Assembly: GCA_965637545.1 (NCBI GenBank)
Contig: OZ281495.1
Span: forward strand, 24,738,001 to 24,802,000
Source of the DNA: Phallusia mammillata
Lineage: Eukaryota
Reading direction: 5' to 3'
Length of the DNA stretch: 64,000 nt
The position numbers and the translations under genes were made by a program. This document shows, piece by piece, positions 304 to 63,826 of the stretch. Within the stretch, counting starts at the first letter, position 1. Every line of letters begins with the position of its first letter. The notes under the pieces were generated by a model. The model was given only the letters and a program-made list of their open reading frames with translations. It did not search any database and was not told the origin of the DNA.

Positions 304-523
304 GTCTTTCGGGTTCATCAACCATTGCTTCGGATTTCGCTGTTCTGTCTGGGGAAGCGACGCTGGATGCTCTTGTGTTTGTGGGATCTCCCTCTCAATT
401 CAAGATGGCGGATCGCACGAGCGCCGATGATCTCGTACACGTTTACGTCGAGTCTGTTCAAGCACATTCCTTCTCCAACTTCCGCACAAGCAATTCCATA
501 ATTCATCTGTCTGACAGACACAG
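304..523 (+). CDS. giant repeat protein exon 1 (in window)
   Basis: tag|..|gtaaac; LSGSSTIASDFAVLSGEATL; phases 1/2. Confidence 0.8.
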
Positions 524-3500
524 GTAAACTATAGCGTTTACTGTGTTATACATAAACGAAATCCTGGAATTTTCATAATGAAAGCTTTCGATTTGCCGAC
601 ACTCAATGATGTACGTAAAAATAGAATGATTTGAATACTAGTGAAGCAGCTAAGATGAAAATATATTCATACTGGGATCAATTCTAAAGCGATTATGCAG
701 ACCGGCATCTAGAAACCATGGTACGCCAGGCCCATTGAAGGCGTTATACCGCAAGTGTTTTCTGACCTGTTCCTTGCCATATGGGAATGCTTGGAAGACC
801 GGCTTAATTCGGTATAACGCCTTCAATGGCCCTGGCGTGCTATAGTTTGCTAGTGAAGCAGTGTGAAAGAAAGATATCAAAGACGTTTGGTTTGAAATAT
901 TAGTCAAAAAATATGTCTTAAGTTGAAATATCCAAATTCAAATTCTGATTTTAACTAGTTTAGCCTTAATACTAATTTTTGTTCAAAGGTTTTACCTCGA
1001 AACGTTGTCAGCTGGAAGCACAGAGACCGTTTTCTCATTGCCAGTCAATGTTGAGGTTTACTTGGGTGGTGCTCTGCTTCTTCCAACATCCAAACCGACT
1101 TTACTTGTGGAAAGTGGACGTCGATTGAAGTGGTGCGGAGGTGCTGACGGATTTACGAGTCTGCTTATTGCTAGTAGTTCGACAGTTGAAACCGACTTCC
1201 CCGCACACACTGGAACTGATATTAGAGACCAAGGTGAGGATTGACTGCTTTTGTGGGTGTTACTGGGAAAGTTTGGCAGATATAAGGTTCCACATAGTAA
1301 TCCAAAACCCAGGGTAGAAAATCTCAGGGCAAAGAAATAACCGTAACGACTTTCTTATGGAATAAATCTCATAACGGCTGATTGAGTTTGGCCTAAGATT
1401 TTGGATTATGGTAATGTAAAATAAAACAGTTATCACTTGGGAACTTTATACTGTGGGGGTTGATTTCAATACAGACAACAACTTTGTAGTATTAATGCAA
1501 ATCTGGGCTAAATGGCTTCATGTTTTAAGTGCGACATATACGGTTTTAAATTAACCGCGAAAATAAATACAAGTAAAAGGATCTAAATATTTCGACAAAT
1601 GCTGTTGTCACCATTATCTTGAATTATGAAACGAAAAAAAGTCCACAGCTGTAATTCTTACGTTTATTATGTGTAGTTCTTTATATACCTTGTAAATCAT
1701 GTGGATAATACTTCAAATTCTGTCAAAGTTTTAGTATCTCTACTGATACTCAAATGTCCATAGTACTAAAGTAAGTTCCAAGTCAAGCCAAGAGTTAATA
1801 TAATTGTTTTCGTTCAAACGTAGGTGTCATCCAACTTACCAATATAACTGTAATGGAGGGCGGTCGGCTCATCCACTCAACCACTTGTGGTGACAACCCG
1901 ACCAACAGACAGTTGAATTTCAAAATATCGGATACAATGGAAATTGATGCCAGCGCGACGGCCGACGATTCATCCTTTAACATCGAGGCTAAGCGACTCC
2001 TGACGACCAACACGGAGACTGTGATTGGCCTTCCCACCGGAAATATATGCCCCGCGACCAATTTGAGTCATGAAGTCACAATTCCAGTGGTCGAGTGTCC
2101 GAATGGCGAATACAACTGTAGCTTGTGTGTCGCCTGTCCCGGAGGCAAACTGGCCGAAGCTGGGTAAGCATAGTTTTAATTTTTATATTTGTTAATTGGC
2201 TACCAAATTGTATTGGGCTTGGTGAAAAAACTAAAATCGTAACTGTTATACTTACTAATAGAATTTATGTTAATGAATTATAAAGTTAGCAGACGGGCTT
2301 ACTTTAAAACCAATACATGTCATCGGTAGCATAATTGCTAGAAAAATACAAGTTAAGTTTTTTACCCTAACAACATGGGACACTTTATGGTAATTCGACG
2401 ATTTATTATTTACGAATGATGACAAAAAAACACTAATTTTGATACCTTGAAGTTAAAGTAACACATAATCACAGCAATGACAAATCATACACCAAAAGCT
2501 TTGATTTATTATAAAACGCACAGTTTACAAGTTTGCTTCAATTTATTCAGGGAATACGGAACTGGCGCTGCGATTTGTGGCTCCTACGTCAATTGCGACT
2601 ACACCACTCTAACTCTGCGCTATGCTGTGTTCTGCAACCTCAACAACCGCGATTATGATTTGACCGAGCTTAACCTACTTAGCGGATCAAGGTAACTAAG
2701 AATGCACCACATAATCTTGTTTCAATATATAAGCTGTTGCTGCCAGGCATAATTTCAACTATAAAGAACTCTTCTGGCAATTGAATTAAAATACAATAAA
2801 TTATAGTTGATGGACTTGATTGTGTATACCAGTGGTTCTCAAACTGTGCGTCGCGACGCCCTGGTGCGTCGTTTCAATTTTCCAAGGGCGTCGCAAAAAA
2901 GTTTTGTTTCGTAGCTTTTTGTTGTTGTATCAATAAACCCGACTTTAATAATAAGTTTCCTCATTAACTTTTATTTGCTGGTGCGTCGCAAGTCCAGAAA
3001 AACTTGTCCAGGGGCGTCGCAACAAAAAAAGTTTGAGAACCACTGGTGTATACAGTAAAAAAACGTGTTATTGTCTTTTAGGTTAAACGTGAATGCCTTG
3101 GGAACTCCCGCAACCTTAAACTTCGACACTTTTACCGTGAATTACGGCAGCCGAATTATTATCACAGCTAATCAGGTGGGTAAAACTTTGAAGTTGAAAC
3201 GTAACTTTCTTGAGAACTTTTTAAAGATAAGCGCTCTATTATTGATTTTTCTTATATTTTAAATTAGAACTATTTAAATGTTTATAAAATTGGTATATTT
3301 TACCATTAAAGGCTACTACTTAAATATATTTTAAAAAGGTGGTGATGGCTGTTACTGTAACAGGCCATGCGTCATTCTGAATAAATGCATTTTGGTTAAT
3401 TGAATTTACTATTGCGTCTTATAAAGTGGGTGAAACCGTGCAAATGAATTGTTATAAAATCGGATACAAAAACTTTTGTGGTGCTGCTAGTTTACTTTTA

Positions 3501-6500
3501 AATTAAAAATTATGGTAAATACAACCATTAATTTAATATAATACAAACGATTCTGACTAATTTCATGCCAAGTTAATGCATACTCGTGTACAAAAAAAAT
3601 GAAATTGGGAATGCGATTACCAGAATCGTCTTTATAACCTATTTGAATCGTTTTCGATTTTCGTGTGCAATAGACCTAAACTATAGAAAACTGGCTTTGC
3701 AGGACGTAAAAATAACAACCAAAGGAGCAATGCGTATTGACGGCCTTATCTACTTTGATCCACAATCAAGCGATGCCACACTCACTCTTGAAGCCCCTGC
3801 ACTAATCGGCCACGGTTCAATCATGTCCACCACTTCGGCATCAATCAATGTGAAACTCACAGAAGCCCCGCTCACTGGCACCACCAAGTGGGATCCGTTC
3901 CGTGGAAAGTTTAACACCAATGGTGGCACAGTCTTGATCGAAGAGCCCGAATCCTCAGGCGGCACCAGGGTGAAGGTCATTTTTGACGGACCGGGTACCT
4001 TTGAGAGAACCTTGCCATCGGAAACGACCAGCATTATTCTGCGGGAAAACGCGCACCTGATCCTTGCGAGCCGTGATGCCTCCGCTCCTGCTATTACCGA
4101 GTTGGGAGGAGATGGCACCGGAACCCTTGAACTAACAGGTCTGAAATTGTTGCAGTTGCTGTGATATTGGTGACGTTAATTAGCCATTATCTTGTCAATA
4201 ATATACTTGGGAATTTGCATTTTTTAAGGTTATTAAGTTTGAAAAATTAGCCAAAGATTTTGTTATATAATGTGCATCGTCTGAAAAGTATTCCATCATA
4301 AAACAGTATTATTTGTATCAGTGGATTAATTCGAAAACATTTCCAATTGTCACCAACATGCAAAATTCGTTTCCTTCTTTATGTGTCTTTTTTAGGTGAC
4401 GGTACGCAACTTACCATCGCTGGTCCCAGCTCCGGGGCAGCAGTCGTCACATCCAAAATCGTGATTGACGAATCAGCAACAGTCGCTTTTGTGGTCCCTG
4501 GAACCTCACCTGAAGCATACGCCGACGCCAGTGTTATCCACGCTACCGTCCGCGGGACTTTGATCGCCAAATCCCTGCTGATTCGCGCCGACGGCCTGGT
4601 CTCGCTTAACAGTCCCACATCTTCGGTTTGCGTTGAAAGCGTCGAGTTGAAGCAAGATTCTGTGCTTTCAATGGCTGAGAAGTCACGCCTCGGAAAATGT
4701 GAAAGTGGAAGTGCAGATAATACAACCACTGTAGATATTGTGGGCGACCTGACCATGCGTTATTTCTCCACCTTCGAGTTTGTCTCTTCTTCGGCTCTTA
4801 CCAACGCCATTGTTACTACTGGTGGTGACATCAGGCTGAAGGACGGGGCACGGTAGGTTAAAATGTGCTTGTAAATTATGTAAAATGACTAGTTTTTGCC
4901 CAATACGAACTTATAAAATGCACTTAAAAAGGACTTGAAAATTAACATACACAAAACGTAAAACCTTTGCCGTTGAAACTAAGGTTACCAAAACGATTTT
5001 TAAAACGCTTTCACAACGAAATGTATCCTTATTTATCAAACATAAATACTTCGGACGTTAAAAAAATTAGGTTCTTTTCGTGTTGTAAACGTTTTTAAAC
5101 AGCATACTAGAACAAAAACGTAGGAATATGTACCCCAAAAATGTAAACTATAACTTAAAACACTACCAACAGCTAAATTGTTAAAAACTCTTGCTCTTGT
5201 AAATAATAAAACTGCTGTAAGAGCAATACTCATTAATACATTATGCCTGGCAGCATCATCTTGTTTAGCTAAATTGTTGGTTCGATGTAGAATGAAGATC
5301 GGCGATGCGAGCCACAAAGTGCACGGAATCAAAGTAACATGTCGGTCGTTGTATGTCGATGCTGGTGCTTCCATATCAGCTGACGGAGTGCTAACCTCAT
5401 CTTCTGAAGTTGTCGAGGACGATGTGGACCTTCTGCTCTCCATAGAAGACGACCAAACCACCACCATAAGGTCACAGAGCTGGGATGCTGGCTTCTTACA
5501 AATTGTCGCAAGTGACCTGGTACAACTCGGTGGCAATTTGGCAGCCAGTGGAGCTTCACTAGCAGGTAAGTTTGTGAGATGGGATAAGGTTATATTTTGT
5601 TAAATGACTTGTAATCTGGTAACTGGTTAAGTGGCATTTGTAATTGGAAAGTAGCATTGGTAATTGTGTTTGGTAACTGGTTAAGTGGTATTGGTGGCGG
5701 TATCTGGTAACTGGTTAAGAGTTATTGGTTTTTTTTAGTTTAGTAAGTGATTAAGAGTCATTTGAATATTTGGCACGTCACGTGTTCTGTTCGTTGTGAC
5801 GCAGTACTTATTTTCACACTCATGACTGCAACCGCGATTTGAACGTGTGCACAAGATTCCTCAATAACATTATGCTAAAATTTGTTTTGACATGGAAGTT
5901 CAAAGAGACAATAAAATCTACTCACTTTTCTGGCAGCCACAAATAAATCACTAATAAAGTATGTATATAGTAATAAGTTGCATTGACAAACACAAGTAAA
6001 AAGAATCAATCAACTGAACAAACGCAGTATTATATAAGAAAATCCAATATTTGACAGGATCAACATCAGTGGGTGGAAGAGGTGGAAAAGTAAGCATCCA
6101 AGCAAGATCCTTGGAGGGACATGGAAACATCGCAGCATCCGGAGGAGACGGAAGCAATACTAACGGAGGAACCGGAGGAAGAATTGAAATCCGCATCGAT
6201 TCCACCCTGGATAAATATACTGGACATTTTGAAGCAGTTGGCGGTTTCTTGAACAGCAATAAAGATATCAGGTACAACATGATTTACTGCGGCATATTTG
6301 TGTATAAATTCTCAGTTTGGGTTTGTAGAAACCAGTGCGTTTGAACAAAATGTATAAACAACTTTTTTTTTCAAATTGTAAAAACAAATTAAGATTAAGA
6401 GCATTAATACAAAAATGAAAAACACGGCAAAACAGGTTTAAAGTATGTGTACGCTCATGTATGAAAGGTAAGGTTAAGGCAAGATATATCAGCGCTAATT

Positions 6501-60500: not shown

Positions 60501-63500
60501 GATTTACGTATTAGAACAGTCTTAAAAAGTTAGCATGAAGACAATTGTTAACTGAGAATGGTAAGTAACAGGTGTCAGTCAATGAATTTACACGGAATAT
60601 ATATATTTCTTGAGTTTCTTATTCAAATAGAAGATAAAGATTCCAGTTAGGCAATATATATATATATATATTCCATTGATTTACCTTGGAAATATCTTCC
60701 ATTCTCAGTTATTTATTCTCATAAACAGTGATCGTCAATGACCATGCTGTCTGTTAAACGGTCAGGTATTGTTCAGTATAATTACTCTTAGTGGACAATT
60801 GTGTTTTTTTTTCCTTTTTTACATGTATATGTTTACAAGTGTTCGAGAACAAACGGTTTCATTCAGGATGGTGCTTTACCATGTGTACTGTTTCTAAAGC
60901 TTTTTGGAGCCGATACGGTAGAGCATGTTAACAAATTTCGATACAACCCAAATAAAGTCTTTAATTCGAAGCATAGCAATTTTGAACAAAAAAACATTTA
61001 ACCAATTTGTATGCATGACACAAACTTATAGTCACGACACTTTTTGTACAGACACTAGGCGGCCGAGGATACTCTTGGACCAGTAACAACCAACAATACG
61101 GCACAGGCGGTGGAAGCGGTGGTCGCGTTGCAATGCACTTGTTCCTGAGAAGAAGCAACGTACGAGCCTCTGCATCGGCCGACGGCTACCAATTCCGTGG
61201 AACAACAACCAACCATGGCGGCACTGGATACGGATACGGGGCTCCTGGAACGCTGTACATCGAAGAAGGCTTTGGAGAGCTTGAAACCAGTCAGTCTGCT
61301 GCTGCTAACGATTCGTCTAGACGTCGACGCAGCACTGACAACACAGGTGAGATAAATCTTCACCCAGAAGGTTGCTTTAATTTGAAGCATGTAATTCGCT
61401 TTCCGATGACCGGCCTTTGGTGAACTGTTGTGGTTGATATACAACTTCATAACAAAGTTAAAATGAACATAAATTCACAACTAAGAGCAGCCCTGAATTG
61501 CTATGTGGACCAGCAATCACGGCACTCGTATGTAAATCACAGTACACCAGGTCCATTGAAGGCGTCATACCGAATCATTCGGCCACCAAGCATTTTCACA
61601 TGGCCAAGGCGTAGGCTAGAAAAAAATCTAGCCCGCGGTGGAATTCGAACCCGCGACAGGAGTCTTTTCGGGACTCGCGCTCTCCCAACTGAGCTACGTA
61701 AGCTCAGTGGTGAACCCGTTTGAATCAGAAGCACCTTTGCCTGGGTCGTATATTGCACATGTCAGCTTCGTAGTAGGAGATCGCCATCTACTCCTGTCAT
61801 TTAGTGAGATATTACATTGTTTTTTTAGACAAACGACAAATACTGGACCAAGAAGCTTATAAGATGCTGATCGTGGACAACGAGAACCGACAAAGCACCC
61901 AATACTGTGTTATGCTGGGCTGGTCAAACGACGAAGAAATCTATTCGCAGAATGACAACCGAACTTCCAGACTTAGGCTAGATGAACTGCGCCTGACGAG
62001 AAAAGGTTGCGTTTATCTGAGGAATTCCATAGACGTGCAGAGTACACCCAATGTTGCTCTGAGCGTTTGGAGAATGACTGGCGATCGTACGGGCCAAGTG
62101 TTAGTTGCCGACAATCAGATGATGATTGTGTCGACTGGAGAAGACCGAACTGAGATTGACAACAAGATTATTCTGTACAGGTAGTTGTACAACCTTTATA
62201 CGAAGCTGCATTGTTACCCTTTTAAAGTAACACTGTCTAGTGCTTAATCCTTCCTGGTGCATTTTAACACTAAAGTTGCCATATTTGTTTTTTTTTCAAA
62301 TATTTTAGGTCAAACTGACTAAAACAAATCTTTAAGAAACTAATGCAGTACTATATTTTTAAAGCATACTCTTGTTTCCAAAAAAAACACAGAGCCTCTG
62401 GACTACTTTTTGCAATGAATGAAAGCAAACCTTGTCAGCTAAAAAAATCTACATTAGATAATGACTTTTTCACAAAAACAATATTATCAGCTTTTGGAAC
62501 CCAACTAAACTCGGCAGAACCTAGCCTTAAACTCCAAATATCCATTTGTTTTCAGGGACGGCTTACTGAGACTTCCAATGTACACTCGTACGAACACATA
62601 CATGCAACTTAGCGGACACGCCGCTGGAGCTCTACACATGACTGTCGCTACAAGCACTGGAAGTTTGGATCTACAATCAACCGGTTTTACATCGACAAGC
62701 GAATGTTTGTTAAATACTAACAGCAGCAGCAACATCACGTGTGTGGTCACTGACGAGGAACGCGGCCAATATCGCTTCAGCACTCTCACTATGAGAGCGA
62801 ACTCCTATCTATACTCCGACAAGTCTGGAATTGTAAGCTTCGCAAACGGGTACAGGACCATGAACTTGAGTGTTTGCGAAAGGTCAGTCACTATTTTTGA
62901 GGCGTTTTACAACATTTTTTGATGATTGTGTCGAACTTGTCATGATTTGTCGCTTATTAAAGCACCACTGATCTTTGAAACGCCCAAATAGACACCTACT
63001 GGTTAATGTACCGTGTCAAATTTTAACAGTTTTATTGAAAAATTTTCCTGTTTTTTTAATGAATGTTAATTTAAGTTGAAAACCTCTGATTGTACCAGAT
63101 TTATTGTGGTTCTGTCGGGATAGAAGTTCCAAAAAACCGCTTGGTATTGAATTTTGTCTGTAGTCTCTGCCCTATGTAACATTATGTAACTTCTAAGAAT
63201 TTGCATAAAAAACTGTTTTATTTTCCGGCGCGTTGTACGAAAATTGGGTAAAATATACTGATTAAATTCCTTTGCTATCCAGATTTGACATTGATGCGGG
63301 AGCTCGGTTTAAAATTGGCGACACAATTCAAGTGAACAGTCACCAGTTTAAGCTGGAATTGGACGCTAAGATCGACGCTGACGTATCTGGATACGCCACA
63401 GGCGGTGGTAGTGGTGGAGGATACACGTGTAGCAGATGTGGTGGCGGAACTGGTGCTGGATACGGAGGAGTTGGTGGTATAGCTGACGGGTAAATGTCTA

Positions 63501-63826
63501 TGAATTGTTCTACCTTGTAATTTGAGTATGCCACAAGACTAAACTTGGCTTCTGAGCGTAAGTTTTAAAATATTTTTAAAATATGTTTAGAAAAATAGAA
63601 TTTTTCTGCCCTGATATTAACAGGTTAACAGATCTGTCACCAATTTATTCAAAATCTTAAAAAATACCTGACGGGCTAACTTATGGGAAAATTTATTAAT
63701 GTACGACTATGCTTTATGTGTACAGCACATGTTCTGGTGGACGACAACATGGTTCAACGTGCTTCCCGTCAGTCATTGGCAGTGGTGGAGGCAGAGTCAG
63801 CAGCAGCAACAATGCTGGAGGAAGAG
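304..63826 (+). CDS. Giant multi-exon glycine-rich repeat protein (partial; 79 exons, ~6,385 aa in window, extends beyond both ends), uncharacterised, probably secreted or cell-surface
   Basis: Manual exon chaining: each exon is open, bounded by AG/GT, and every exon length fits its flanking intron phases; total 19,155 nt = 2 + 6,384 codons + 1. Recurrent motifs GD[RK]TG, PCS[FY], G.GPG.G, G.GHGG.GG, Y.S.Y.P..GSGGG, LDG, GGGSGGS[IV], GG.GGRI[AT], GAAGT.Y occur ~13 times. Many N-x-S/T sequons. Confidence 0.9.
650..849 (+). mobile_element. tRNA-derived SINE copy with fold-back tail
   Basis: 12-bp TSD CTAGTGAAGCAG (638-649, 850-861); family tail ccttgccatatgggaatgcttggaagaccgg..cggtataacgccttcaatggccctggcg. 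Confidence 0.75.
989..1233 (+). CDS. exon 2
   Basis: aag|..|gtgagg; FYLETLSAGSTETVF; phases 2/1. Confidence 0.85.
1824..2163 (+). CDS. exon 3
   Basis: tag|..|gtaagc; VIQLTNITVMEGG..CPNGEYNCSLCVACPGG; 1/2. Confidence 0.9.
2551..2691 (+). CDS. exon 4
   Basis: cag|..|gtaact; EYGTGAAICGSYVNCDY; 2/2. Confidence 0.85.
2830..3045. mobile_element. hAT-type MITE, family 1 copy A (216 bp)
   Basis: TIR CAGTGGTTCTCAAAC/GTTTGAGAACCACTG; perfect 8-bp TSD GTGTATAC. Confidence 0.92.
3082..3175 (+). CDS. exon 5
   Basis: tag|..|gtgggt; LNVNALGTPATLNFDTF; 2/0. Confidence 0.85.
3703..4138 (+). CDS. exon 6
   Basis: cag|..|gtctga; DVKITTKGAMRIDG..GGDGTGTLEL; 0/1; acceptor chosen by phase. Confidence 0.8.
4396..4852 (+). 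CDS. exon 7
   Basis: tag|..|gtaggt; DGTQLTIAGPSSG; 1/2. Confidence 0.9.
5291..5565 (+). CDS. exon 8
   Basis: tag|..|gtaagt; MKIGDASHKVHG; 2/1. Confidence 0.9.
5617..5719. repeat. Short degenerate direct repeat
   Basis: TGGTAACTGGTTAAG three times (5617, 5671, 5705). Confidence 0.75.
6058..6271 (+). CDS. exon 9
   Basis: cag|..|gtacaa; STSVGGRGGKVSI..GGTGGRIEI; 1/2. Confidence 0.9.
6742..8240 (+). CDS. exon 10 (1,499 nt, about one whole module)
   Basis: cag|..|gtttgt; AAAGIIYRSY..GGGAGGRVSI; includes ORF 6938..8302; 2/1. Confidence 0.92.
8308..8471 (+). CDS. exon 11
   Basis: tag|..|gtatgt; GIKKETTEDVYDP; 1/0. Confidence 0.85.
8587..8805. mobile_element. hAT-type MITE, family 1 copy B
   Basis: Homologous to 2830..3045 throughout; TSD ACCCAAAC/ACCTAAAC (7/8). 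Confidence 0.9.
9112..9289 (+). CDS. exon 12
   Basis: aag|..|gtaaca; VKRLHSESSALIEL; 0/1. Confidence 0.85.
9552..9764 (+). CDS. exon 13
   Basis: cag|..|gtacgt; LLTNVFEMVVSSG; 1/1. Confidence 0.9.
10197..10596. mobile_element. hAT-type MITE (400 bp) with TAGGGATG termini
   Basis: TIR TAGGGATGCGCC/GGCACATCCCTA; perfect TSD ATTGCTAT; subterminal CCGAGC/GCTCGG repeats. Confidence 0.9.
10625..10770 (+). CDS. exon 14
   Basis: tag|..|gtatat; SLEIFYGGRLLG; 1/0. Confidence 0.9.
11138..11342 (+). CDS. exon 15
   Basis: tag|..|gtatgt; INNVGFGAGHAGYGG; 0/1. Confidence 0.9.
11840..12023 (+). CDS. exon 16
   Basis: tag|..|gtatgg; SIISDATHG..GGSGGRITV; 1/2. Confidence 0.9.
12434..12663 (+). CDS. exon 17
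   Basis: tag|..|gtacta; WSFKGTTALSGG..GAAGTLYV; 2/1. Confidence 0.88.
12767..12980. mobile_element. Old TIR family with CCCGAAC/GTTCGGG subterminal repeats (other fragments near 10868-10935, 23690-23735, 36515-36575, 38595-38712, 48390-48541, 49962-50024)
   Basis: Left end CAGGGTTGTAAGTCGG; the matching right-end motif CCCGAACCTGAC.CGA.TTA.AAC recurs at several loci (CGATTTACAACTCTG at 50010-50024). Confidence 0.5.
13022..13237 (+). CDS. exon 18
   Basis: tag|..|gtaaaa; NVRVKISADNTEL; 1/1. Confidence 0.9.
13665..14490 (+). CDS. exon 19
   Basis: tag|..|gtatgt; NLTTSNIILDD..GSGGRIAT; 1/2. Confidence 0.92.
14542..14592 (-). ncRNA. Minimal hammerhead ribozyme in the inverted Penelope copy
   Basis: Exact reverse complement of 18262..18312. 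Confidence 0.85.
14710..15471 (-). CDS. Inverted partial Penelope-like ORF (RT C-terminus + GIY-YIG), 5' part lost in the gap
   Basis: ORF 14710..15465(-) equals the last 251 aa of the 796-aa protein and runs into the N gap. Confidence 0.9.
   Translation of the reverse strand, partial: LDVEILKAADGKLSTRVYHKPTSTMRYLHFTSHHPLYQKRAVVKALKDQARRLTTDPALLQAELHRVNEALRLNGYPNWILRDHKKISRKEIQYKERAFVTLPYIPRLTDIIRRMLTDFGVSVGIKPANTLRQMLSHPKDPLDATATRGVVYAIPCGECDEIYIGETGRSLNTRRKEHERDVGKKDAKKSALANHATTHHHSINFSAAQVLVKETDFHKRSFLESWNIHSRANTMNVKTDVLMPINYRSLLHH
15472..15671. other. Assembly gap (200 N, probably nominal size)
   Basis: Run of N. Confidence 1.
15672..15712 (+). ncRNA. Hammerhead ribozyme upstream of copy 1, 5' end cut by the gap
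   Basis: gatgaaggcgtcttgtataggacgtcgaaacgtcgattg immediately after the Ns. Confidence 0.75.
15754..18144 (+). CDS. Penelope-like element polyprotein: reverse transcriptase + GIY-YIG endonuclease (copy 1, 796 aa)
   Basis: RT motifs YGLPKVHK, LRPIVS, VSFDVTSLFTNVP, YKQMYGTAMGSPVS, RYVDDTF, LPFLDV, VYHKPT; EN motif GVVYAIPCGECDEIYIGETGRSLNTRRKEH. Confidence 0.97.
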   Translation: MPGSNSLFHEFKGLYGPSVLSQLRKYVDLRRSIVRHKMHLFFNHRCLSDNVLPRSLRFRSPHNSAAGKKIMWKCGMAFIRLRIGLSHHRIRECSELSEELLLRLAAILSHHHMCRFELYVKSGNEALQRQLTINTERHLCSIVPKRQEAVNATGQLQKKNWVVNLSSYQPNEVELKVLQLGTNFAVAPRTVPKASMLACVEKGIYSLPLHVKNLIQSKLVNCIKSHRGNPCNLTTSERRAVTDLKANDDITILPADKGNSTVILDRKVYEDKIHELLHDSSTYKKLPRDPTRRTEQVLNKFVGVLHKEKNCISDAMFHHLHSTDGSAPRLYGLPKVHKKNVPLRPIVSFIGSPTYNLAKYLARILAPLIGNTEFTVRNSAEFVKSLNAQQSLSEDETLVSFDVTSLFTNVPIDLALEITKSRLLDDYSFKDRTTWTHEDIHRGLEICLQQTYFRFRGSFYKQMYGTAMGSPVSVAVANMVMESVEERALQTFDKPPRFWRRYVDDTFCIIHKHRVTEFLRHLNNVQRGIAFTMELESKNRLPFLDVEILKAADGKLSTRVYHKPTSTMRYLHFTSHHPLYQKRAVVKALKDQARRLTTDPALLQAELHRVNEALRLNGYPNWILRDHKKISRKEIQYKERAFVTLPYIPRLTDIIRRMLTDFGVSVGIKPANTLRQMLSHPKDPLDATATRGVVYAIPCGECDEIYIGETGRSLNTRRKEHERDVGKKDAKKSALANHATTHHHSINFSAAQVLVKETDFHKRSFLESWNIHSRANTMNVKTDVLMPINYRSLLHH
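18262..18312 (+). ncRNA. Minimal type-I hammerhead ribozyme in the Penelope spacer (between copies 1 and 2)
   Basis: CTGATGA 18270-76; stem II ggcgtctt/aggacgtc; GAAA 18298-301; palindromic ACGT helix III; GUC triplet with cut after 18305; stem I atc/gat. Confidence 0.85.
18354..20744 (+). CDS. Penelope-like RT/GIY-YIG polyprotein (copy 2, 796 aa)
   Basis: Translation identical to copy 1. Confidence 0.97.
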   Translation: MPGSNSLFHEFKGLYGPSVLSQLRKYVDLRRSIVRHKMHLFFNHRCLSDNVLPRSLRFRSPHNSAAGKKIMWKCGMAFIRLRIGLSHHRIRECSELSEELLLRLAAILSHHHMCRFELYVKSGNEALQRQLTINTERHLCSIVPKRQEAVNATGQLQKKNWVVNLSSYQPNEVELKVLQLGTNFAVAPRTVPKASMLACVEKGIYSLPLHVKNLIQSKLVNCIKSHRGNPCNLTTSERRAVTDLKANDDITILPADKGNSTVILDRKVYEDKIHELLHDSSTYKKLPRDPTRRTEQVLNKFVGVLHKEKNCISDAMFHHLHSTDGSAPRLYGLPKVHKKNVPLRPIVSFIGSPTYNLAKYLARILAPLIGNTEFTVRNSAEFVKSLNAQQSLSEDETLVSFDVTSLFTNVPIDLALEITKSRLLDDYSFKDRTTWTHEDIHRGLEICLQQTYFRFRGSFYKQMYGTAMGSPVSVAVANMVMESVEERALQTFDKPPRFWRRYVDDTFCIIHKHRVTEFLRHLNNVQRGIAFTMELESKNRLPFLDVEILKAADGKLSTRVYHKPTSTMRYLHFTSHHPLYQKRAVVKALKDQARRLTTDPALLQAELHRVNEALRLNGYPNWILRDHKKISRKEIQYKERAFVTLPYIPRLTDIIRRMLTDFGVSVGIKPANTLRQMLSHPKDPLDATATRGVVYAIPCGECDEIYIGETGRSLNTRRKEHERDVGKKDAKKSALANHATTHHHSINFSAAQVLVKETDFHKRSFLESWNIHSRANTMNVKTDVLMPINYRSLLHH
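20862..20912 (+). ncRNA. Minimal hammerhead ribozyme (between copies 2 and 3)
   Basis: Identical motif, +2,600 bp. Confidence 0.85.
20954..23344 (+). CDS. Penelope-like RT/GIY-YIG polyprotein (copy 3, 796 aa, Y>C in the YGLPK motif)
   Basis: Same as copy 1 except A>G at 21945 (PRLYGLPK > PRLCGLPK). Confidence 0.96.
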   Translation: MPGSNSLFHEFKGLYGPSVLSQLRKYVDLRRSIVRHKMHLFFNHRCLSDNVLPRSLRFRSPHNSAAGKKIMWKCGMAFIRLRIGLSHHRIRECSELSEELLLRLAAILSHHHMCRFELYVKSGNEALQRQLTINTERHLCSIVPKRQEAVNATGQLQKKNWVVNLSSYQPNEVELKVLQLGTNFAVAPRTVPKASMLACVEKGIYSLPLHVKNLIQSKLVNCIKSHRGNPCNLTTSERRAVTDLKANDDITILPADKGNSTVILDRKVYEDKIHELLHDSSTYKKLPRDPTRRTEQVLNKFVGVLHKEKNCISDAMFHHLHSTDGSAPRLCGLPKVHKKNVPLRPIVSFIGSPTYNLAKYLARILAPLIGNTEFTVRNSAEFVKSLNAQQSLSEDETLVSFDVTSLFTNVPIDLALEITKSRLLDDYSFKDRTTWTHEDIHRGLEICLQQTYFRFRGSFYKQMYGTAMGSPVSVAVANMVMESVEERALQTFDKPPRFWRRYVDDTFCIIHKHRVTEFLRHLNNVQRGIAFTMELESKNRLPFLDVEILKAADGKLSTRVYHKPTSTMRYLHFTSHHPLYQKRAVVKALKDQARRLTTDPALLQAELHRVNEALRLNGYPNWILRDHKKISRKEIQYKERAFVTLPYIPRLTDIIRRMLTDFGVSVGIKPANTLRQMLSHPKDPLDATATRGVVYAIPCGECDEIYIGETGRSLNTRRKEHERDVGKKDAKKSALANHATTHHHSINFSAAQVLVKETDFHKRSFLESWNIHSRANTMNVKTDVLMPINYRSLLHH
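23462..23512 (+). ncRNA. Minimal hammerhead ribozyme (after copy 3)
   Basis: Identical motif, +5,200 bp. Confidence 0.85.
23995..24293 (+). CDS. exon 20
   Basis: cag|..|gtaaat; ARGGGAGESD..IGDRT; 2/1, in phase with exon 19 across the retroelement. Confidence 0.92.
24405..24570 (+). mobile_element. Second short HHR-like dispersed repeat family, copy A
   Basis: CTGATGA 24504-10 ... GCCGAAACGTT then AATAAA; homologous in reverse complement to 58440..58595. Confidence 0.55.
24921..25504 (+). CDS. exon 21
   Basis: aag|..|gtaaca; VLHIMKNRTII; 1/0. Confidence 0.9.
25872..26119 (+). CDS. exon 22
   Basis: tag|..|gtttgt; NGHGGKTHGSV; 0/2. Confidence 0.9.
26179..26415 (+). mobile_element. Short non-autonomous HHR-bearing retroposon (Penelope-derived or retrozyme-like) with 17-bp TSD
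   Basis: TTAACTTTGTATTTTCG at 26162..26178 and 26416..26432; internal tgca-CTGATGA-tgacaacagtgattgtt-GAAACGTC-tgca at 26332..26371. Confidence 0.75.
26440..26566 (+). CDS. exon 23
   Basis: tag|..|gtacat; NLYGFGSLTASGG..GGRIAI; 2/0. Confidence 0.9.
26940..27688 (+). CDS. exon 24
   Basis: tag|..|gtaagc; GSATALGASG..FAGDKTG; 0/2. Confidence 0.9.
27946..28145 (+). CDS. exon 25
   Basis: cag|..|gtgtgt; FMPDLGMIGDV; 2/1. Confidence 0.88.
28658..28831 (+). CDS. exon 26
   Basis: cag|..|gtaaga; GYGSYGGHDGS; 1/1. Confidence 0.9.
29203..29384 (+). CDS. exon 27
   Basis: aag|..|gttggt; TIESKGASASS..GGRIAI; 1/0. Confidence 0.9.
29821..30146 (+). CDS. exon 28
   Basis: cag|..|gtaagt; GFYNARGGEGTC; 0/2. 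Confidence 0.9.
30456..30613 (+). CDS. exon 29
   Basis: tag|..|gtaaaa; FSGDLTGLVHMK; 2/1. Confidence 0.9.
30751..32007. repeat. Minisatellite of 40 units (31/32 bp) with a 15-unit, 472-bp higher-order repeat
   Basis: Units AAGGTGTTTTGGGGGACCGAAACGTTTTTTT (31) and AAGATGTTTTTGGGGGACCGAAACGTTTTTTT (32). Confidence 0.97.
32195..32335 (+). mobile_element. tRNA-derived SINE copy
   Basis: Box-B-like GGTTCGAGTCCC, ggcta..tggcc hairpin, family tail. Confidence 0.75.
32485..32638 (+). CDS. exon 30
   Basis: cag|..|gtttga; IGSVAFKWYGEI; 1/2. Confidence 0.87.
33095..33351 (+). CDS. exon 31
   Basis: cag|..|gtttgt; LTTWELGALSSA; 2/1. Confidence 0.88.
33964..34176 (+). CDS. exon 32
   Basis: cag|..|gtttgt; NGKTYDSIYEPT..GGGSGGAVWI; 1/1. 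Confidence 0.9.
34517..34705 (+). mobile_element. Diverged copy of the short HHR-bearing element
   Basis: tgcaCTGATGAtgacaacagcgattgttGAACCATCtgca at 34616..34655; 3' tail similar to the 26372..26415 tail; candidate TSD AAAACATGTAT at 34506..34516 and 34706..34716. Confidence 0.6.
34813..35316. mobile_element. hAT-type MITE (504 bp)
   Basis: TIR TAGTGATGTACCGAAT/ATTCGGTACATCTCTA; perfect TSD GTTTAAAG; subterminal TTCGGCCGAA/ACCGAAT repeats. Confidence 0.9.
35346..35587 (+). CDS. exon 33
   Basis: cag|..|gttggt; SSKGHGEIDVTGG..GGRIAL; 1/0. Confidence 0.9.
36193..36476 (+). CDS. exon 34
   Basis: cag|..|gtaagt; NFLPVKPFVLSE; 0/2. Confidence 0.9.
37153..37364 (+). CDS. exon 35
   Basis: cag|..|gtaagt; RSVPPVNFEVLE; 2/1. 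Confidence 0.9.
37830..38041 (+). CDS. exon 36
   Basis: cag|..|gtaagt; YRFSLDVLTMEA; 1/0. Confidence 0.9.
38767..38919 (+). CDS. exon 37
   Basis: cag|..|gtatac; GPGAATESGHGAGHGG; 0/0. Confidence 0.9.
39109..39250 (+). CDS. exon 38
   Basis: tag|..|gtaaat; GGRGGSRIRIDV; 0/1. Confidence 0.9.
39407..39533 (+). CDS. exon 39
   Basis: tag|..|gtactt; SFTGHGYLTVNGG..GGRAAV; 1/2. Confidence 0.9.
39651..39750 (+). CDS. exon 40
   Basis: tag|..|gtaaaa; AIGGSGADVSTHGG; 2/0. Confidence 0.88.
39820..40004 (+). CDS. exon 41
   Basis: cag|..|gtaaat; SSADSGGFYGNLLVDN; 0/2. Confidence 0.88.
40508..40616 (+). CDS. exon 42
   Basis: cag|..|gtaagg; FAGDRTGQIHLR; 2/0. Confidence 0.9.
40829..40968 (+). CDS. exon 43
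   Basis: cag|..|gtaaat; VDKDAELVLPTRT; 0/2. Confidence 0.9.
41050..41168. mobile_element. Small hAT-like TIR remnant (119 bp)
   Basis: CAGTGATTCTCAACCGGT / ACCGGTCGAAAATCACTG (16/18); no TSD recognisable. Confidence 0.55.
41433..41513 (+). CDS. exon 44
   Basis: cag|..|gtaacc; TGICVDGVTVSATEPG; 2/2. Confidence 0.85.
41580..41792 (+). CDS. exon 45
   Basis: cag|..|gtaagt; SSEVKIEETSES; 2/2. Confidence 0.88.
41860..41977 (+). CDS. exon 46
   Basis: tag|..|gtaagt; LGAGHGGYGGSL; 2/0. Confidence 0.9.
42052..42210 (+). mobile_element. tRNA-derived SINE copy
   Basis: Head gtcccggaaagac..gtcgtgggttccaatccc plus family tail; candidate TSD ACTTAAAAT. Confidence 0.75.
42363..42519 (+). CDS. exon 47
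   Basis: cag|..|gtcagt; GVGGSGGGVLLW; 0/1. Confidence 0.9.
42605..42709 (+). CDS. exon 48
   Basis: tag|..|gtaaga; HGEVRVNGGNG..GGRLAV; 1/1. Confidence 0.9.
42860..43058 (+). CDS. exon 49
   Basis: cag|..|gttagt; YLRSVGGSG..GPQYAQMKY; 1/2. Confidence 0.87.
43361..43642. mobile_element. TIR element with ~43-bp imperfect inverted termini
   Basis: caggaactcacact..gtttgctaaattccggtagatgg vs ccatttatcggtatttagcaagc..agtgtgagttcttg; a related end fragment lies near 9989..10013. Confidence 0.6.
43729..43890 (+). CDS. exon 50
   Basis: cag|..|gtaaaa; YAEPWMYTMIQ..YEFSE; 2/2. Confidence 0.87.
44030..44165 (-). mobile_element. Possible second tRNA-derived SINE family fragment
   Basis: GC-rich island with minus-strand GGGGTTCGATCCC box B; 3' part unrelated to the main SINE tail. 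Confidence 0.35.
44577..44711 (+). CDS. exon 51
   Basis: cag|..|gtgagg; DKTVAIVHKFLGDRTG; 2/2. Confidence 0.9.
45061..45912. mobile_element. Non-autonomous TIR DNA transposon (852 bp), 8-bp TSD, hAT-like
   Basis: TIR CAGTGGCGTATCCA/TGGATACGCCCCTG; perfect TSD GATGCAAA; G/C-run subterminal palindromes; no transposase ORF. Confidence 0.88.
45974..46142 (+). CDS. exon 52
   Basis: cag|..|gtaaag; VDVGAELIMPTK; 2/0. Confidence 0.9.
46676..46865 (+). CDS. exon 53
   Basis: tag|..|gtaagt; HQITDPGTFMFG; 0/1. Confidence 0.9.
47365..47553 (+). CDS. exon 54
   Basis: tag|..|gtttgt; VLHMDSAGYHAGEGPG; 1/1. Confidence 0.9.
48039..48206 (+). CDS. exon 55
   Basis: cag|..|gtaaga; SVKGGSGGGYLHW; 1/1. Confidence 0.9.
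48613..48795 (+). CDS. exon 56
   Basis: tag|..|gtaacc; EFSVRGGNGG..GGRIAI; 1/1. Confidence 0.9.
48995..49122 (+). mobile_element. tRNA-derived SINE copy (5'-degenerate)
   Basis: cccaccgcaggctagattttctagcc plus family tail. Confidence 0.7.
49259..49506 (+). CDS. exon 57
   Basis: cag|..|gttggt; TAYVEENLRPPQYRHLKY; 1/0. Confidence 0.9.
49586..49870. mobile_element. Degenerate hAT-like MITE
   Basis: Left end caaggggtgcccaaacttt; right-end-like gcgggccacagtttaggccc; boundaries approximate. Confidence 0.4.
50089..50298 (+). CDS. exon 58
   Basis: cag|..|gttgat; NATHSNGTAEEL..FIGDRTG; 0/0. Confidence 0.85.
50805..51025 (-). mobile_element. tRNA-derived SINE copy with fold-back tail
   Basis: Minus-strand head tagctcagttggtagagtgcgagtcccggaaaaactc; tail present in both orientations (50814-50918). 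Confidence 0.8.
51108..51374 (+). CDS. exon 59
   Basis: tag|..|gtcaga; THLEGVRSTFAG; 0/0. Confidence 0.88.
51963..52104 (+). CDS. exon 60
   Basis: cag|..|gtggga; IKYFGNLYANIA; 0/1. Confidence 0.87.
52230..52340 (+). CDS. exon 61
   Basis: tag|..|gtaaga; NGLGAGHGGQGG; 1/1. Confidence 0.9.
52915..53100 (+). CDS. exon 62
   Basis: cag|..|gtttgt; NGLSGNNIVDQGG; 1/1. Confidence 0.9.
53506..53593 (+). CDS. exon 63
   Basis: cag|..|gtaagg; HGLVDVRGGNGG..GGRIAI; 1/2. Confidence 0.9.
54042..54287 (+). CDS. exon 64
   Basis: tag|..|gtaagt; YRYSYGGSFLN..PPQYRILKY; 2/2. Confidence 0.9.
54640..54895 (+). CDS. exon 65
   Basis: cag|..|gtaacg; YVHVDNEGILVP..HKFLGDKTG; 2/0. Confidence 0.9.
55258..55390 (+). 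CDS. exon 66
   Basis: cag|..|gtaaac; VVHVEVKESTNN; 0/1. Confidence 0.9.
55752..56174 (+). CDS. exon 67
   Basis: cag|..|gtaggt; TMTGVHSMFIEN; 1/1. Confidence 0.9.
56579..56727 (+). CDS. exon 68
   Basis: tag|..|gttatt; MAVSNSMNDTHD; 1/0. Confidence 0.88.
57067..57633 (+). CDS. exon 69
   Basis: tag|..|gtaagt; VGKTLHLDG..GPQYRELKY; 0/0. Confidence 0.92.
57715..57850 (+). mobile_element. Degenerate tRNA-derived SINE
   Basis: gctaagttggtag (box A-like), gttcgaac (box B-like), ttgattcggtataatgcct tail fragment. Confidence 0.5.
57916..58049 (+). CDS. exon 70
   Basis: cag|..|gttcgt; NTDTVDMVAHELTGDKQG; 0/2. Confidence 0.9.
58144..58300 (+). CDS. exon 71
   Basis: cag|..|gtttgt; FDISEGGEVVLPT; 2/0. 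Confidence 0.9.
58440..58595 (-). mobile_element. Second short HHR-like repeat family, copy B (core degenerate)
   Basis: Reverse complement aligns to 24405..24570 (aaaagcgacatgctttatt..atatgagggg.cacatcag.tacacc.gtttataaa.acttg.gtcacataa). Confidence 0.55.
58730..58976 (+). CDS. exon 72
   Basis: cag|..|gtcagt; LFDKSNPYDKRR; 0/1. Confidence 0.87.
59454..59651 (+). CDS. exon 73
   Basis: tag|..|gtaaaa; AILSADKAGDGP; 1/1. Confidence 0.9.
59961..60178. mobile_element. Older hAT-type MITE (218 bp)
   Basis: TIR CAACGGTTCCCTAAC vs GGTTGTGAACCGCTG; TSD CTATAAGA/CTCTAAGA (7/8); GGGGTCAC subterminal motifs. Confidence 0.7.
60275..60456 (+). CDS. exon 74
   Basis: tag|..|gtaagt; TVGGRGGGHIDI; 1/0. Confidence 0.9.
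61052..61346 (+). CDS. exon 75
   Basis: cag|..|gtgaga; TLGGRGYSW..SRRRRS; 0/1. Confidence 0.9.
61534..61715 (-). mobile_element. tRNA-derived SINE, best-preserved copy
   Basis: Minus strand: TAGCTCAGTTGG (box A), GAGTC-CCGAAAA-GACTC anticodon-like arm, GGTTCGAATTCC (box B), GGCTAGA-T-run-TCTAGCC hairpin, then family tail. Confidence 0.85.
61829..62180 (+). CDS. exon 76
   Basis: tag|..|gtagtt; KRQILDQEAYKMLIVDN..MTGDRTG; 1/2. Confidence 0.9.
62556..62882 (+). CDS. exon 77
   Basis: cag|..|gtcagt; DGLLRLPMYTRT; 2/2; an alternative phase-2 donor exists at 62850. Confidence 0.82.
63283..63489 (+). CDS. exon 78
   Basis: cag|..|gtaaat; FDIDAGARFKIG; 2/2. Confidence 0.9.
63726..63826 (+). CDS. 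exon 79 (gene continues beyond window)
   Basis: cag|..|gtaagc; TCSGGRQHGSTC..GSGGG; 2/1. Confidence 0.87.

Follow-up and report, generated by a model that had tools for sequence, protein, structure and literature searches.

A candidate giant gene for a secreted protein of recurring beta-helix modules in the tunicate Phallusia mammillata

Bacterial adhesins are typically built as right-handed beta-helix rods, an architecture that to our knowledge is rare among animal matrix proteins. Here we describe a 64,000-nucleotide stretch of Phallusia mammillata DNA (C2:24,738,001-24,802,000 of a 240-Mb assembly; eukaryotic DNA, GC 36-46%), referred to below as the window, which is probably part of one giant gene for a secreted protein of ~19,000 residues, built from modules predicted to fold as beta-helices and forming a structural or adhesive extracellular fibre. 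The predicted fold is that of the bacterial beta-helix adhesins (the two-partner-secretion exoproteins HMW1, EtpA and FHA, and the autotransporter passengers pertactin, Ag43, TibA and IcsA), and like these the Phallusia product would be very long, repetitive, extracellular and probably rod-like. The sequence identity is only 8-18%, however, and unlike the bacterial adhesins the giant gene has a putative eukaryotic signal peptide, introns, approximately 30 discrete modules of ~430 amino acids (aa), and animal matrix domains. It is without the TPS domain and the beta-barrel translocator of the bacterial proteins, with NPN[GL] occurring once in the 19,047 aa of the gene model and no such Pfam match. 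Nor does it resemble an RTX beta-roll (GGxGxDxUx): GG.G.D is found five times in the 19,047 aa, the glycine motifs are without aspartate, and there is no HemolysinCabind match.

Among animal proteins, the marine adhesive footprint proteins recurrently carry EGF arrays, FA58C and vWD domains (PMC9382459). The sea-star Sfp1/Sfp2-like proteins and flatworm ap1 resemble the Phallusia product in being secreted, very large, and furnished with EGF, FA58C and vWD domains, and no beta-helix is mentioned for them (PMC9382459). Measured against the Sfp1 type, the Phallusia model has FA58C and EGF domains, its VWD match is below the cut-off, and there is no GDPH in the VWD region; the only GDPH motif in the 19,047 aa lies in an upstream module, away from VWD, and C8 and TIL are not seen in the exons scanned. 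The EGF repeats match EGF_Teneurin, EGF_TEN and EGF_2, a likeness to teneurins and tenascins. Unlike teneurins, the model has no transmembrane segment, and no YD-shell/Rhs, NHL or FN3/fibrinogen match in the exons scanned; the EGF array is far longer, and the C-terminus consists of VWD, LamG-like and F5/8C domains. A giant secreted modular matrix protein is a known kind of protein, and what is new is the undescribed beta-helix repeat module.

Exon chain and module repeat

Exons were chained by dynamic programming. Coding potential was scored as codon log-odds taken from long open stretches, and splice sites were scored with donor and acceptor matrices that had been trained and then retrained on the program's own first pass. 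The chainer picks the best phase-consistent chain without modelling gene starts or ends, and it was blind to the exons of an earlier reading of this DNA (the original prediction). Setting the exon penalty to -12 or -15 yields 79 exons in the window (304-523 through 63726-63826), which comprise 19,155 coding nucleotides (nt) or 6,385 codons, with zero stops and GT...AG at every intron; exons have a median length of 198 nt and introns one of 432 nt. The coding chain is far beyond chance, scoring 2442 on the + strand versus 260 on the reverse complement (40 exons, 6,014 nt) and 47-118 on five block-shuffled copies, and its figures are identical to those originally given for a run of 79 in-frame exons with canonical splice sites and no stop between 304 and 63826. 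A low exon penalty with the retrained chainer over-called (112 exons in the window) and was discarded for -12 and -15. An unmasked first chain was also discarded, as it ran through the open reading frames (ORFs) of Penelope-like elements and contained tiny bridging exons.

A chain that demands phase was not by itself taken as proof, and the module repeat served as an internal check. In the window, the + frames contain 13 instances of the hallmark G.GGR[IVAL] and the - frames none; the 13 are at positions 6168, 8027, 11986, 14426, 26516, 29334, 35402, 39472, 42658, 48663, 53562, 57253 and 61112. The exons that bear it (9, 10, 16, 19, 23, 27, 33, 39, 48, 56, 63, 69 and 75) reproduce the originally listed exon numbers exactly. 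Interspersed repeats dominated an all-against-all BLAST of the translated segments, which was set aside. A module hidden Markov model (HMM) of 421 positions was built from 18 aligned, regularly spaced modules and searched against the joined gene model. Thirteen full head-to-tail modules start in the window (the last ends at 64416), together with a degenerate stretch over exons 1-9, and most of them span HMM positions 1-10 to 420-421, each abutting the next. The consensus runs L.VDN, FDE, GDrTG.iH, Pcsf, GPG.G, G.GAGHGG.GG, YGS...P..GSGGG, GG.GGG, LDG, GGGSGGS, GHG, GGGGaGGRIA and GaAGT, which reproduces the motif order that had been proposed for a recurring ~430-aa module. The HMM can be placed on both sides of 69 exon junctions in the window, and at 68 of these its coordinate carries on to within 6 positions; the exception is 43058|43729 in module 9, with 7 extra residues. 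The remaining 10 junctions belong to the degenerate 785 aa at the beginning or lie where modules meet.

The modules share a mean pairwise identity of only 25% (range 11-44%) and are interrupted by 0 to 8 introns each, at positions only partly shared between modules. Given this low identity, they appear to be old copies that have been kept open rather than recent duplicates, and selection would be what has held them open. In a 35-sequence alignment the invariant columns are 14 glycines and one arginine (of GGR), and the near-invariant columns are glycines together with D77, S309, S377 and T452.

Whole gene, predicted fold and relatives

The ends of the gene were sought in 100 kb of flank per side, in which negative coordinates denote positions upstream of the window. 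There are 27 hallmarks on the + strand between -68146 and 64299 and none further out, with a single one on the - strand (in 264 kb). The resulting gene model extends from about -73,431 to +93,171 (~24.665-24.831 Mb), or ~167 kb with ~227 exons and ~19,070 codons, and encodes 19,047 residues plus a leader, of which the window exons contribute residues ~8,640-15,024; it contains 27 full modules of ~430 aa and no fewer than 4 that are partial or degenerate. The strong upstream exons begin at -73361, in an open frame that opens at ~-73431 with MSWPQHSYVLGVTAVLFASLFVKVKA|VDG, and this sequence reads as a signal peptide when judged by eye and by hydropathy, no dedicated predictor being used. Further upstream on the + strand are a 1,571-nt exon, which by eye and unscanned we take to be acyl-CoA-dehydrogenase-like, and exons that are presumably WD40-like, likewise by eye and unscanned (L004-L005, -88,800 to -79,600). 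Because of its acyl-CoA-dehydrogenase-like appearance we regard this neighbour as a different gene that marks the 5' limit. At the other end the last strong exon, read beyond its putative donor, stops at 93169 (...GIDDLLNRRN*), and the exons chained after it are weak. The description of the gene as open at both ends therefore holds for the window only, since with the flanks it closes at both ends. The proposed extension into the flanks thus yields a signal-peptide-like start and a stop, and none of the 19,047 modelled residues lies in a membrane-like segment, the highest Kyte-Doolittle mean over 19 residues being 1.5.

Pfam scans, run exon by exon, place extracellular domain types on both sides of the modules. 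A 3,674-nt exon near the 5' end (-64839 to -61166; L006:5163-8834) matches DERM (E 2.9e-26) and F5/8C (E 4e-09), and the ~900 aa following its discoidin domain show only a faint module match. To the 3' side of the last module (61846-64416) are ~14 kb of exons with teneurin-type EGF repeats (EGF_2, EGF_Teneurin and EGF_TEN), ~2,100 aa in all, and these are followed by VWD-like pieces, a LamG-like piece, a Gly-Ser linker, another EGF and two F5/8C. The VWD and F5/8C exon pieces at this end are just under the Pfam cut-offs, with VWD single-exon matches of 21.1 and 16.6 bits against a cut-off of 22.9. The order in the product is then a putative signal peptide, a partial module, dermatopontin, discoidin, the modules, the EGF repeats, VWD and LamG-like pieces, the Gly-Ser linker and two discoidins. 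The signal-peptide-like exon, the extracellular domains and the predicted beta-helix support the view of a secreted or surface-exposed, rod-like, uncharacterised giant. Among the roles originally offered (matrix, adhesive or receptor), a secreted matrix or adhesive protein is favoured over a receptor because of the stop at 93169 and the lack of a membrane segment. N-glycosylation sequons, which had been advanced as evidence for secretion, carry no such signal, as there are 51 N-x-S/T sites versus 49 expected from composition.

Modelling and structural comparison of a single module, which the original prediction had suggested, give a confident beta-helix prediction. An AlphaFold2 model of 6785-8239 (exon 10; 35-row alignment) has a predicted local distance difference test score (pLDDT) of 87.8 and a predicted template modelling score (pTM) of 0.89, and is all-beta with ~35 short strands; we confidently predict that the module is an elongated right-handed parallel beta-helix. 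The glycine runs (GGGSGGS and GGGGxGGRI) would form tight turns between the short strands. A Foldseek search of the PDB returns nothing at E<=0.001, and its weak rows are nearly all right-handed beta-helices. With VIA-align (48,161 chains) the closest are the secretion domains of HMW1 (2odl, Z 15.1) and EtpA (8cpk, 14.7), and pertactin (2iou, 13.7); 4q1q is at 12.1, and a beta-helical antifreeze protein, TibA, Candida Awp adhesins and IcsA are also at the top (Z 15.1-11.9 and 226-292 residues aligned for this group). PL6 lyases, pectate lyases and tailspikes appear at Z 9-11. An Atlas shape search finds a mollusc cluster at a template modelling score (TM) of 0.76 and bacterial clusters, some with G8 domains. 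By sequence there is no match to a curated beta-helix family (Beta_helix/PbH1, G8 or Pectate_lyase), no Pfam family on the module exons at E<=10 or on the four animal homologues named below at E<=0.01, and nothing at E<=1 when solved structures are searched with the glycine-rich half of the module. A FokI_dom_2 Pfam match at 17 bits was set aside as noise. No exon of the Phallusia gene contains two modules, and a pair of modules was therefore modelled from the Ciona sequence XP_078490748.1, with a pLDDT of 76.9 and a low-confidence junction at residues 486-509. Matches to one module only are tight, with a root-mean-square deviation (rmsd) of ~3 A, and an end-to-end arrangement of modules is plausible on this model.

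An exhaustive protein search with exon 10 recovers 296 representative proteins at E<=1e-3. Exon 10 is 59% identical to protein P0001 and 43% identical to Ciona XP_078490748, with animal homologues at 33-43%, and the best named match is a Ciona intestinalis protein. Four animal homologues carry the full 421-position module head to tail: Ciona intestinalis LOC100179046 (XP_078490747/8), the sea urchin Diadema antillarum (XP_071498054), the acorn worm Saccoglossus kowalevskii LOC144342564 (XP_077861759) and the clam Solemya velum (KAL5010959). These named matches are all "uncharacterized" or "hypothetical", the only other being an archaeal protein from a metagenome-assembled genome (MAG) that is named only for a LamG-like fold. 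With uncharacterised homologues and no Pfam family for the module, the original statement that no characterised gene could be recognised stands. The relatives proposed there among marine invertebrates are borne out by these four animals, and the proposed plant relatives come down to a single weak Atlas structural row (DUF8003, PF26010; TM 0.50, residues 112-480). A literature search found no paper mentioning the four animal identifiers, and nothing on DUF8003/At4g32920 or on a beta-helix with dermatopontin, discoidin or teneurin in ascidians. Two related tunicate contigs (L023 and L024) are collinear with the gene exon by exon at 34-69% identity, and their introns are not conserved. In addition, a metagenome scaffold from the European Nucleotide Archive (L028; 7,810 nt) is filled by one uninterrupted ORF for a 2,507-aa relative with full modules and 8 near-identical members. 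Because this ORF is uninterrupted, the full animal-type module exists in intron-free form in an unidentified organism.

In giant prokaryotic surface proteins the similarity is confined to the C-terminal, glycine-rich half of the module (HMM ~180/235-421). Two of these, P0008 (5,121 aa) and P0009 (6,521 aa), have bacterial-type signal peptides, and the Nanoarchaeota MAG protein MFH1641356 shares the same half-module, in which the motifs follow the order YG..GSGG, GGG.i.i, L.G.iS.NG, GGSGGS.H., G.G...A.GG, GGGGRIS,.TG.Y and GG.GTI. For one pair, composition-adjusted BLASTP gives E 1e-08. The prokaryotic giants differ from the Phallusia gene in that they are without the N-terminal half (the GDrTG..H and PCSF block), and their repeat period, intervening sequence and domain context are not the same.

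Alternative readings of the locus

A scenario consistent with these data is that the product is secreted and forms a long stiff extracellular fibre or an adhesive or cohesive scaffold, in which the beta-helix modules would give length and rigidity, as in the bacterial beta-helix adhesins, and multimerisation and attachment to matrix or glycans would fall to the terminal lectin-like (dermatopontin and discoidin), EGF and VWD domains. Several observations weigh against it. The structural or adhesive role is drawn by analogy of fold and domains only. Long beta-helices align across both modules of the Ciona model only at rmsd 9-14 A (9.1 A for EtpA), which leaves one stacked rod as a possibility only. 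The named animal homologues, of 1,197-4,555 aa and up to ~10 modules, are all much shorter, and because the chainer is without a model of starts and ends there may be internal promoters or several transcripts. Four small runs that we guess to be RNA, of the same species and from four studies, contain no contig on the 15 exons in 38700-44699 and no joints between them, and their contigs match intronic repeats only (42170-42215, 43113-43145, 43378-43446 and 44037-44181); these runs are tiny (16-34 million letters of contigs) and show neither expression nor silence, and the two sequencing runs that contain the stretch are not recorded as RNA and look like DNA. There is also a 1-nt frame break in a GGA-rich run near -27,650 (about -27,700 to -27,580; C2 ~24,710,300-24,710,420; L011), where frame 0 reads ...SSGSDGSSNGEEEVVERS and the expected GGSGGTIRIKSPHVDGAGNVTANGGNG continues in another frame, so that the hallmark of that module is out of frame and the chain escapes through another donor. 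If real and unspliced around, the break would end translation before the window exons. It is the only one met in ~19,000 codons, and we take it for an assembly error because ~13,300 stop-free codons lie downstream.

The short annotated relatives, the lack of RNA evidence and the fact that the chainer forces one chain without starts or stops would also fit a single family, duplicated in tandem and present here as several neighbouring genes or as alternative transcripts, whose phase-compatible exons were copied together. We regard this as unlikely. There is no internal signal-peptide-like or strongly hydrophobic segment in the 19,047 residues, none of the ~226 junctions needs a stop, and the HMM passes from its end at 420/421 to a start at 1-10. 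Many exons straddle module borders (26940-27688, 49259-49506 and 57067-57633), and the wide differences in intron position between modules argue against a recent block duplication of whole genes. In the relatives the module matches start and end mid-module at the protein ends, which makes the short named proteins look like fragments; automatic annotation seems to truncate such genes. The same frame break and the absence of RNA contigs on the exons could alternatively point to a decaying or silent pseudogene in which the break is real and the window exons are untranslated, and we consider this improbable to a high degree: no stop interrupts the downstream codons across modules that share only 25% identity, the exons are conserved with two other tunicates whereas the introns are not, the loss of one base in a run of the GGAGGAGGA type is an error that long-read assemblies typically make, and the RNA runs are as small as noted above.

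A different function is conceivable for the same fold, in that the modules might be catalytic or glycan-binding beta-helices (pectate or alginate lyases, tailspike depolymerases or CEMIP-type G8) acting on tunic cellulose or on sulfated glycans. The lyases and tailspikes among the fold matches, the bacterial G8-domain clusters among the Atlas rows, and the capacity of discoidin and dermatopontin domains to bind glycans or matrix are in keeping with this. However, with only glycines and one arginine invariant, no catalytic-looking cluster is conserved, such as the acidic or basic clusters of lyases and hydrolases; no Pfam lyase, hydrolase, Beta_helix or G8 family is matched even at E<=10; the best fold matches are adhesin beta-helices; and relatives are present also in animals without a tunic. 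We hold it to be most unlikely. The single giant gene for a secreted fibre or adhesive is the reading we prefer, and in its boldest form, which we put forward tentatively and consider doubtful, it would be a chordate protein of ~19,000 residues, among the largest predicted in animals, with ~30 modules in a stiff rod of a few hundred nm, representing an undescribed class of fibre or adhesive shared by tunicates, echinoderms, hemichordates and molluscs, and with a half-module shared with prokaryotes by deep ancestry or ancient transfer.

On the preferred reading, an undescribed ~430-aa module without a Pfam family in the copy searched accounts for ~13,500 residues of one secreted chordate protein, and unnamed proteins from four or more animal phyla contain it too. 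The 421-position profile, the predicted fold and a gene model from putative signal peptide to stop provide a handle for annotating "uncharacterised" giant genes of marine invertebrates, and the gene is a candidate for tunic, matrix or bioadhesive studies.

Exons, assembly gap and repeats along the window

All exons are on the + strand. Exons 1-9 (304-523, 989-1233, 1824-2163, 2551-2691, 3082-3175, 3703-4138, 4396-4852, 5291-5565 and 6058-6271) cover 304-6271 and form the degenerate module region of ~785 aa that ends in the first hallmark (6168). Matches to the module HMM in this region are partial only (positions 64-236, 48-106, 55-250 and 316-420), and the exons are collinear with L023 and L024. 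Exon 10 (6742-8240) sits in a stop-free stretch of 532 codons and holds a complete single-exon module at 6785-8147 (HMM 9-421, score 326), with its hallmark at 8027. Module 2 (8183-12516; HMM 9-421, score 363) is formed by the end of exon 10 and exons 11-17 (8308-8471, 9112-9289, 9552-9764, 10625-10770, 11138-11342, 11840-12023 and 12434-12663); its junctions are continuous on the HMM and its exons are conserved in L023 and L024. Module 3 (12582-24083; HMM 37-421, 405 aa) comprises the end of exon 17, exons 18 and 19 and the start of exon 20 (13022-13237, 13665-14490 and 23995-24293 for exons 18-20), and spans the intron that contains the assembly gap.

This intron, intron 19 (14491-23994; 9,504 nt), holds a gap of Ns and Penelope-like copies and no coding sequence of the gene. 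An inverted partial copy (14512-15471), whose 960-bp arm abuts the gap, and three direct 2,600-bp units lie on either side of the Ns (15472-15671); the units are 99.9-100% identical, and their intact 799-aa ORFs are at 15745-18141, 18345-20741 and 20945-23341. The ORF matches RVT_1 (E 1.9e-07, which passes the cut-off) and, at residues 695-735, GIY-YIG (E 0.008, which does not). This reverse transcriptase with a weak GIY-YIG match behind it in one ORF identifies the element as Penelope-like, as do the tandem and inverted copies, and the cluster (14512-23542) looks recently active. Exons 13665-14490 and 23995-24293, which border the intron, are compatible in phase (2+1), successive hallmarks are 424 aa apart across the intron versus 405-477 elsewhere in the window, the module across it covers HMM 37-421, and in the tunicate contig L024, from a public run, the aligned pieces abut exactly at the 14490|23995 junction, where that contig has a short intron. 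Since these four lines agree, the gap hides retroelement rather than coding sequence.

Part of this region occurs twice in the assembly. A segment of 9,154 bp (5735-14888), from the end of intron 8 through exon 19 and the start of the inverted Penelope-like arm, recurs at 100.000% identity on a second contig (C3:3253041-3264912; L026/L027), directly after a 200-N gap and followed by one Penelope-like unit, and there is no second copy of 24000-30000. The most likely explanation of the C3 copy is duplication during assembly or misplacement of a haplotig, and if uncorrected the copy would give a spurious gene fragment.

Downstream of the gap the modules follow one another closely. Module 4 (24080-27030; HMM 2-421, score 362) extends over exons 20-24 (23995-24293, 24921-25504, 25872-26119, 26440-26566 and the start of 26940-27688), and module 5 (27027-29899; HMM 2-420, score 306) over exons 24-28 (26940-27688, 27946-28145, 28658-28831, 29203-29384 and the start of 29821-30146). 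Module 6 (29950-35513; HMM 8-421, score 354) uses exons 28-33 (29821-30146, 30456-30613, 32485-32638, 33095-33351, 33964-34176 and 35346-35587), among which 30456-30613 and 32485-32638 are weak and find support in the continuous HMM coordinate. Exons 33-40 (the end of 35346-35587, 36193-36476, 37153-37364, 37830-38041, 38767-38919, 39109-39250, 39407-39533 and 39651-39750) make up module 7 (35546-39706; HMM 7-420, score 375), and exons 41-49 (39820-40004, 40508-40616, 40829-40968, 41433-41513, 41580-41792, 41860-41977, 42363-42519, 42605-42709 and the start of 42860-43058) make up module 8 (39850-42919; HMM 28-421, score 385).

Module 9 (42913-49267; HMM 1-420, score 425) is encoded by exons 49-57 (42860-43058, 43729-43890, 44577-44711, 45974-46142, 46676-46865, 47365-47553, 48039-48206, 48613-48795 and the start of 49259-49506), and module 10 (49267-54133; HMM 2-418, score 455) by exons 57-64 (49259-49506, 50089-50298, 51108-51374, 51963-52104, 52230-52340, 52915-53100, 53506-53593 and 54042-54287). 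Next come module 11 (54196-57391; HMM 1-420, score 424) in exons 64-69 (the end of 54042-54287, 54640-54895, 55258-55390, 55752-56174, 56579-56727 and the start of 57067-57633) and module 12 (57388-61259; HMM 1-421, score 382) in exons 69-75 (57067-57633, 57916-58049, 58144-58300, 58730-58976, 59454-59651, 60275-60456 and 61052-61346). Only the start of module 13, the last (genome 61846-64416; HMM 8-420, score 322), is in the window, in exons 76-79 (61829-62180, 62556-62882, 63283-63489 and 63726-63826, together 61829-63826); it is completed by the exon 64090-64896 just beyond, which carries the fourteenth hallmark at 64299.

Among the various other repeats, an intronic 32-bp minisatellite (unit GTTTTTTTAAGATGTTTTTGGGGGACCGAAAC) extends over 30751-32007 with 40 copies and 95% matches, and it accounts for a GC-skew spike of 0.32 at 30-32 kb. 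Young interspersed repeats are present in introns at 10195-10597 and also at 24421-24594 and 26242-26423; they include a ~400-bp element found dozens of times, at 96-99% identity, across all large contigs, and two elements of ~175 bp with many copies at 84-89%. An intronic tRNA match on the - strand (61630-61703; Rfam, 32.8 bits, barely above the gathering score) could represent either a tRNA gene or the leading part of a tRNA-derived short interspersed element (SINE).

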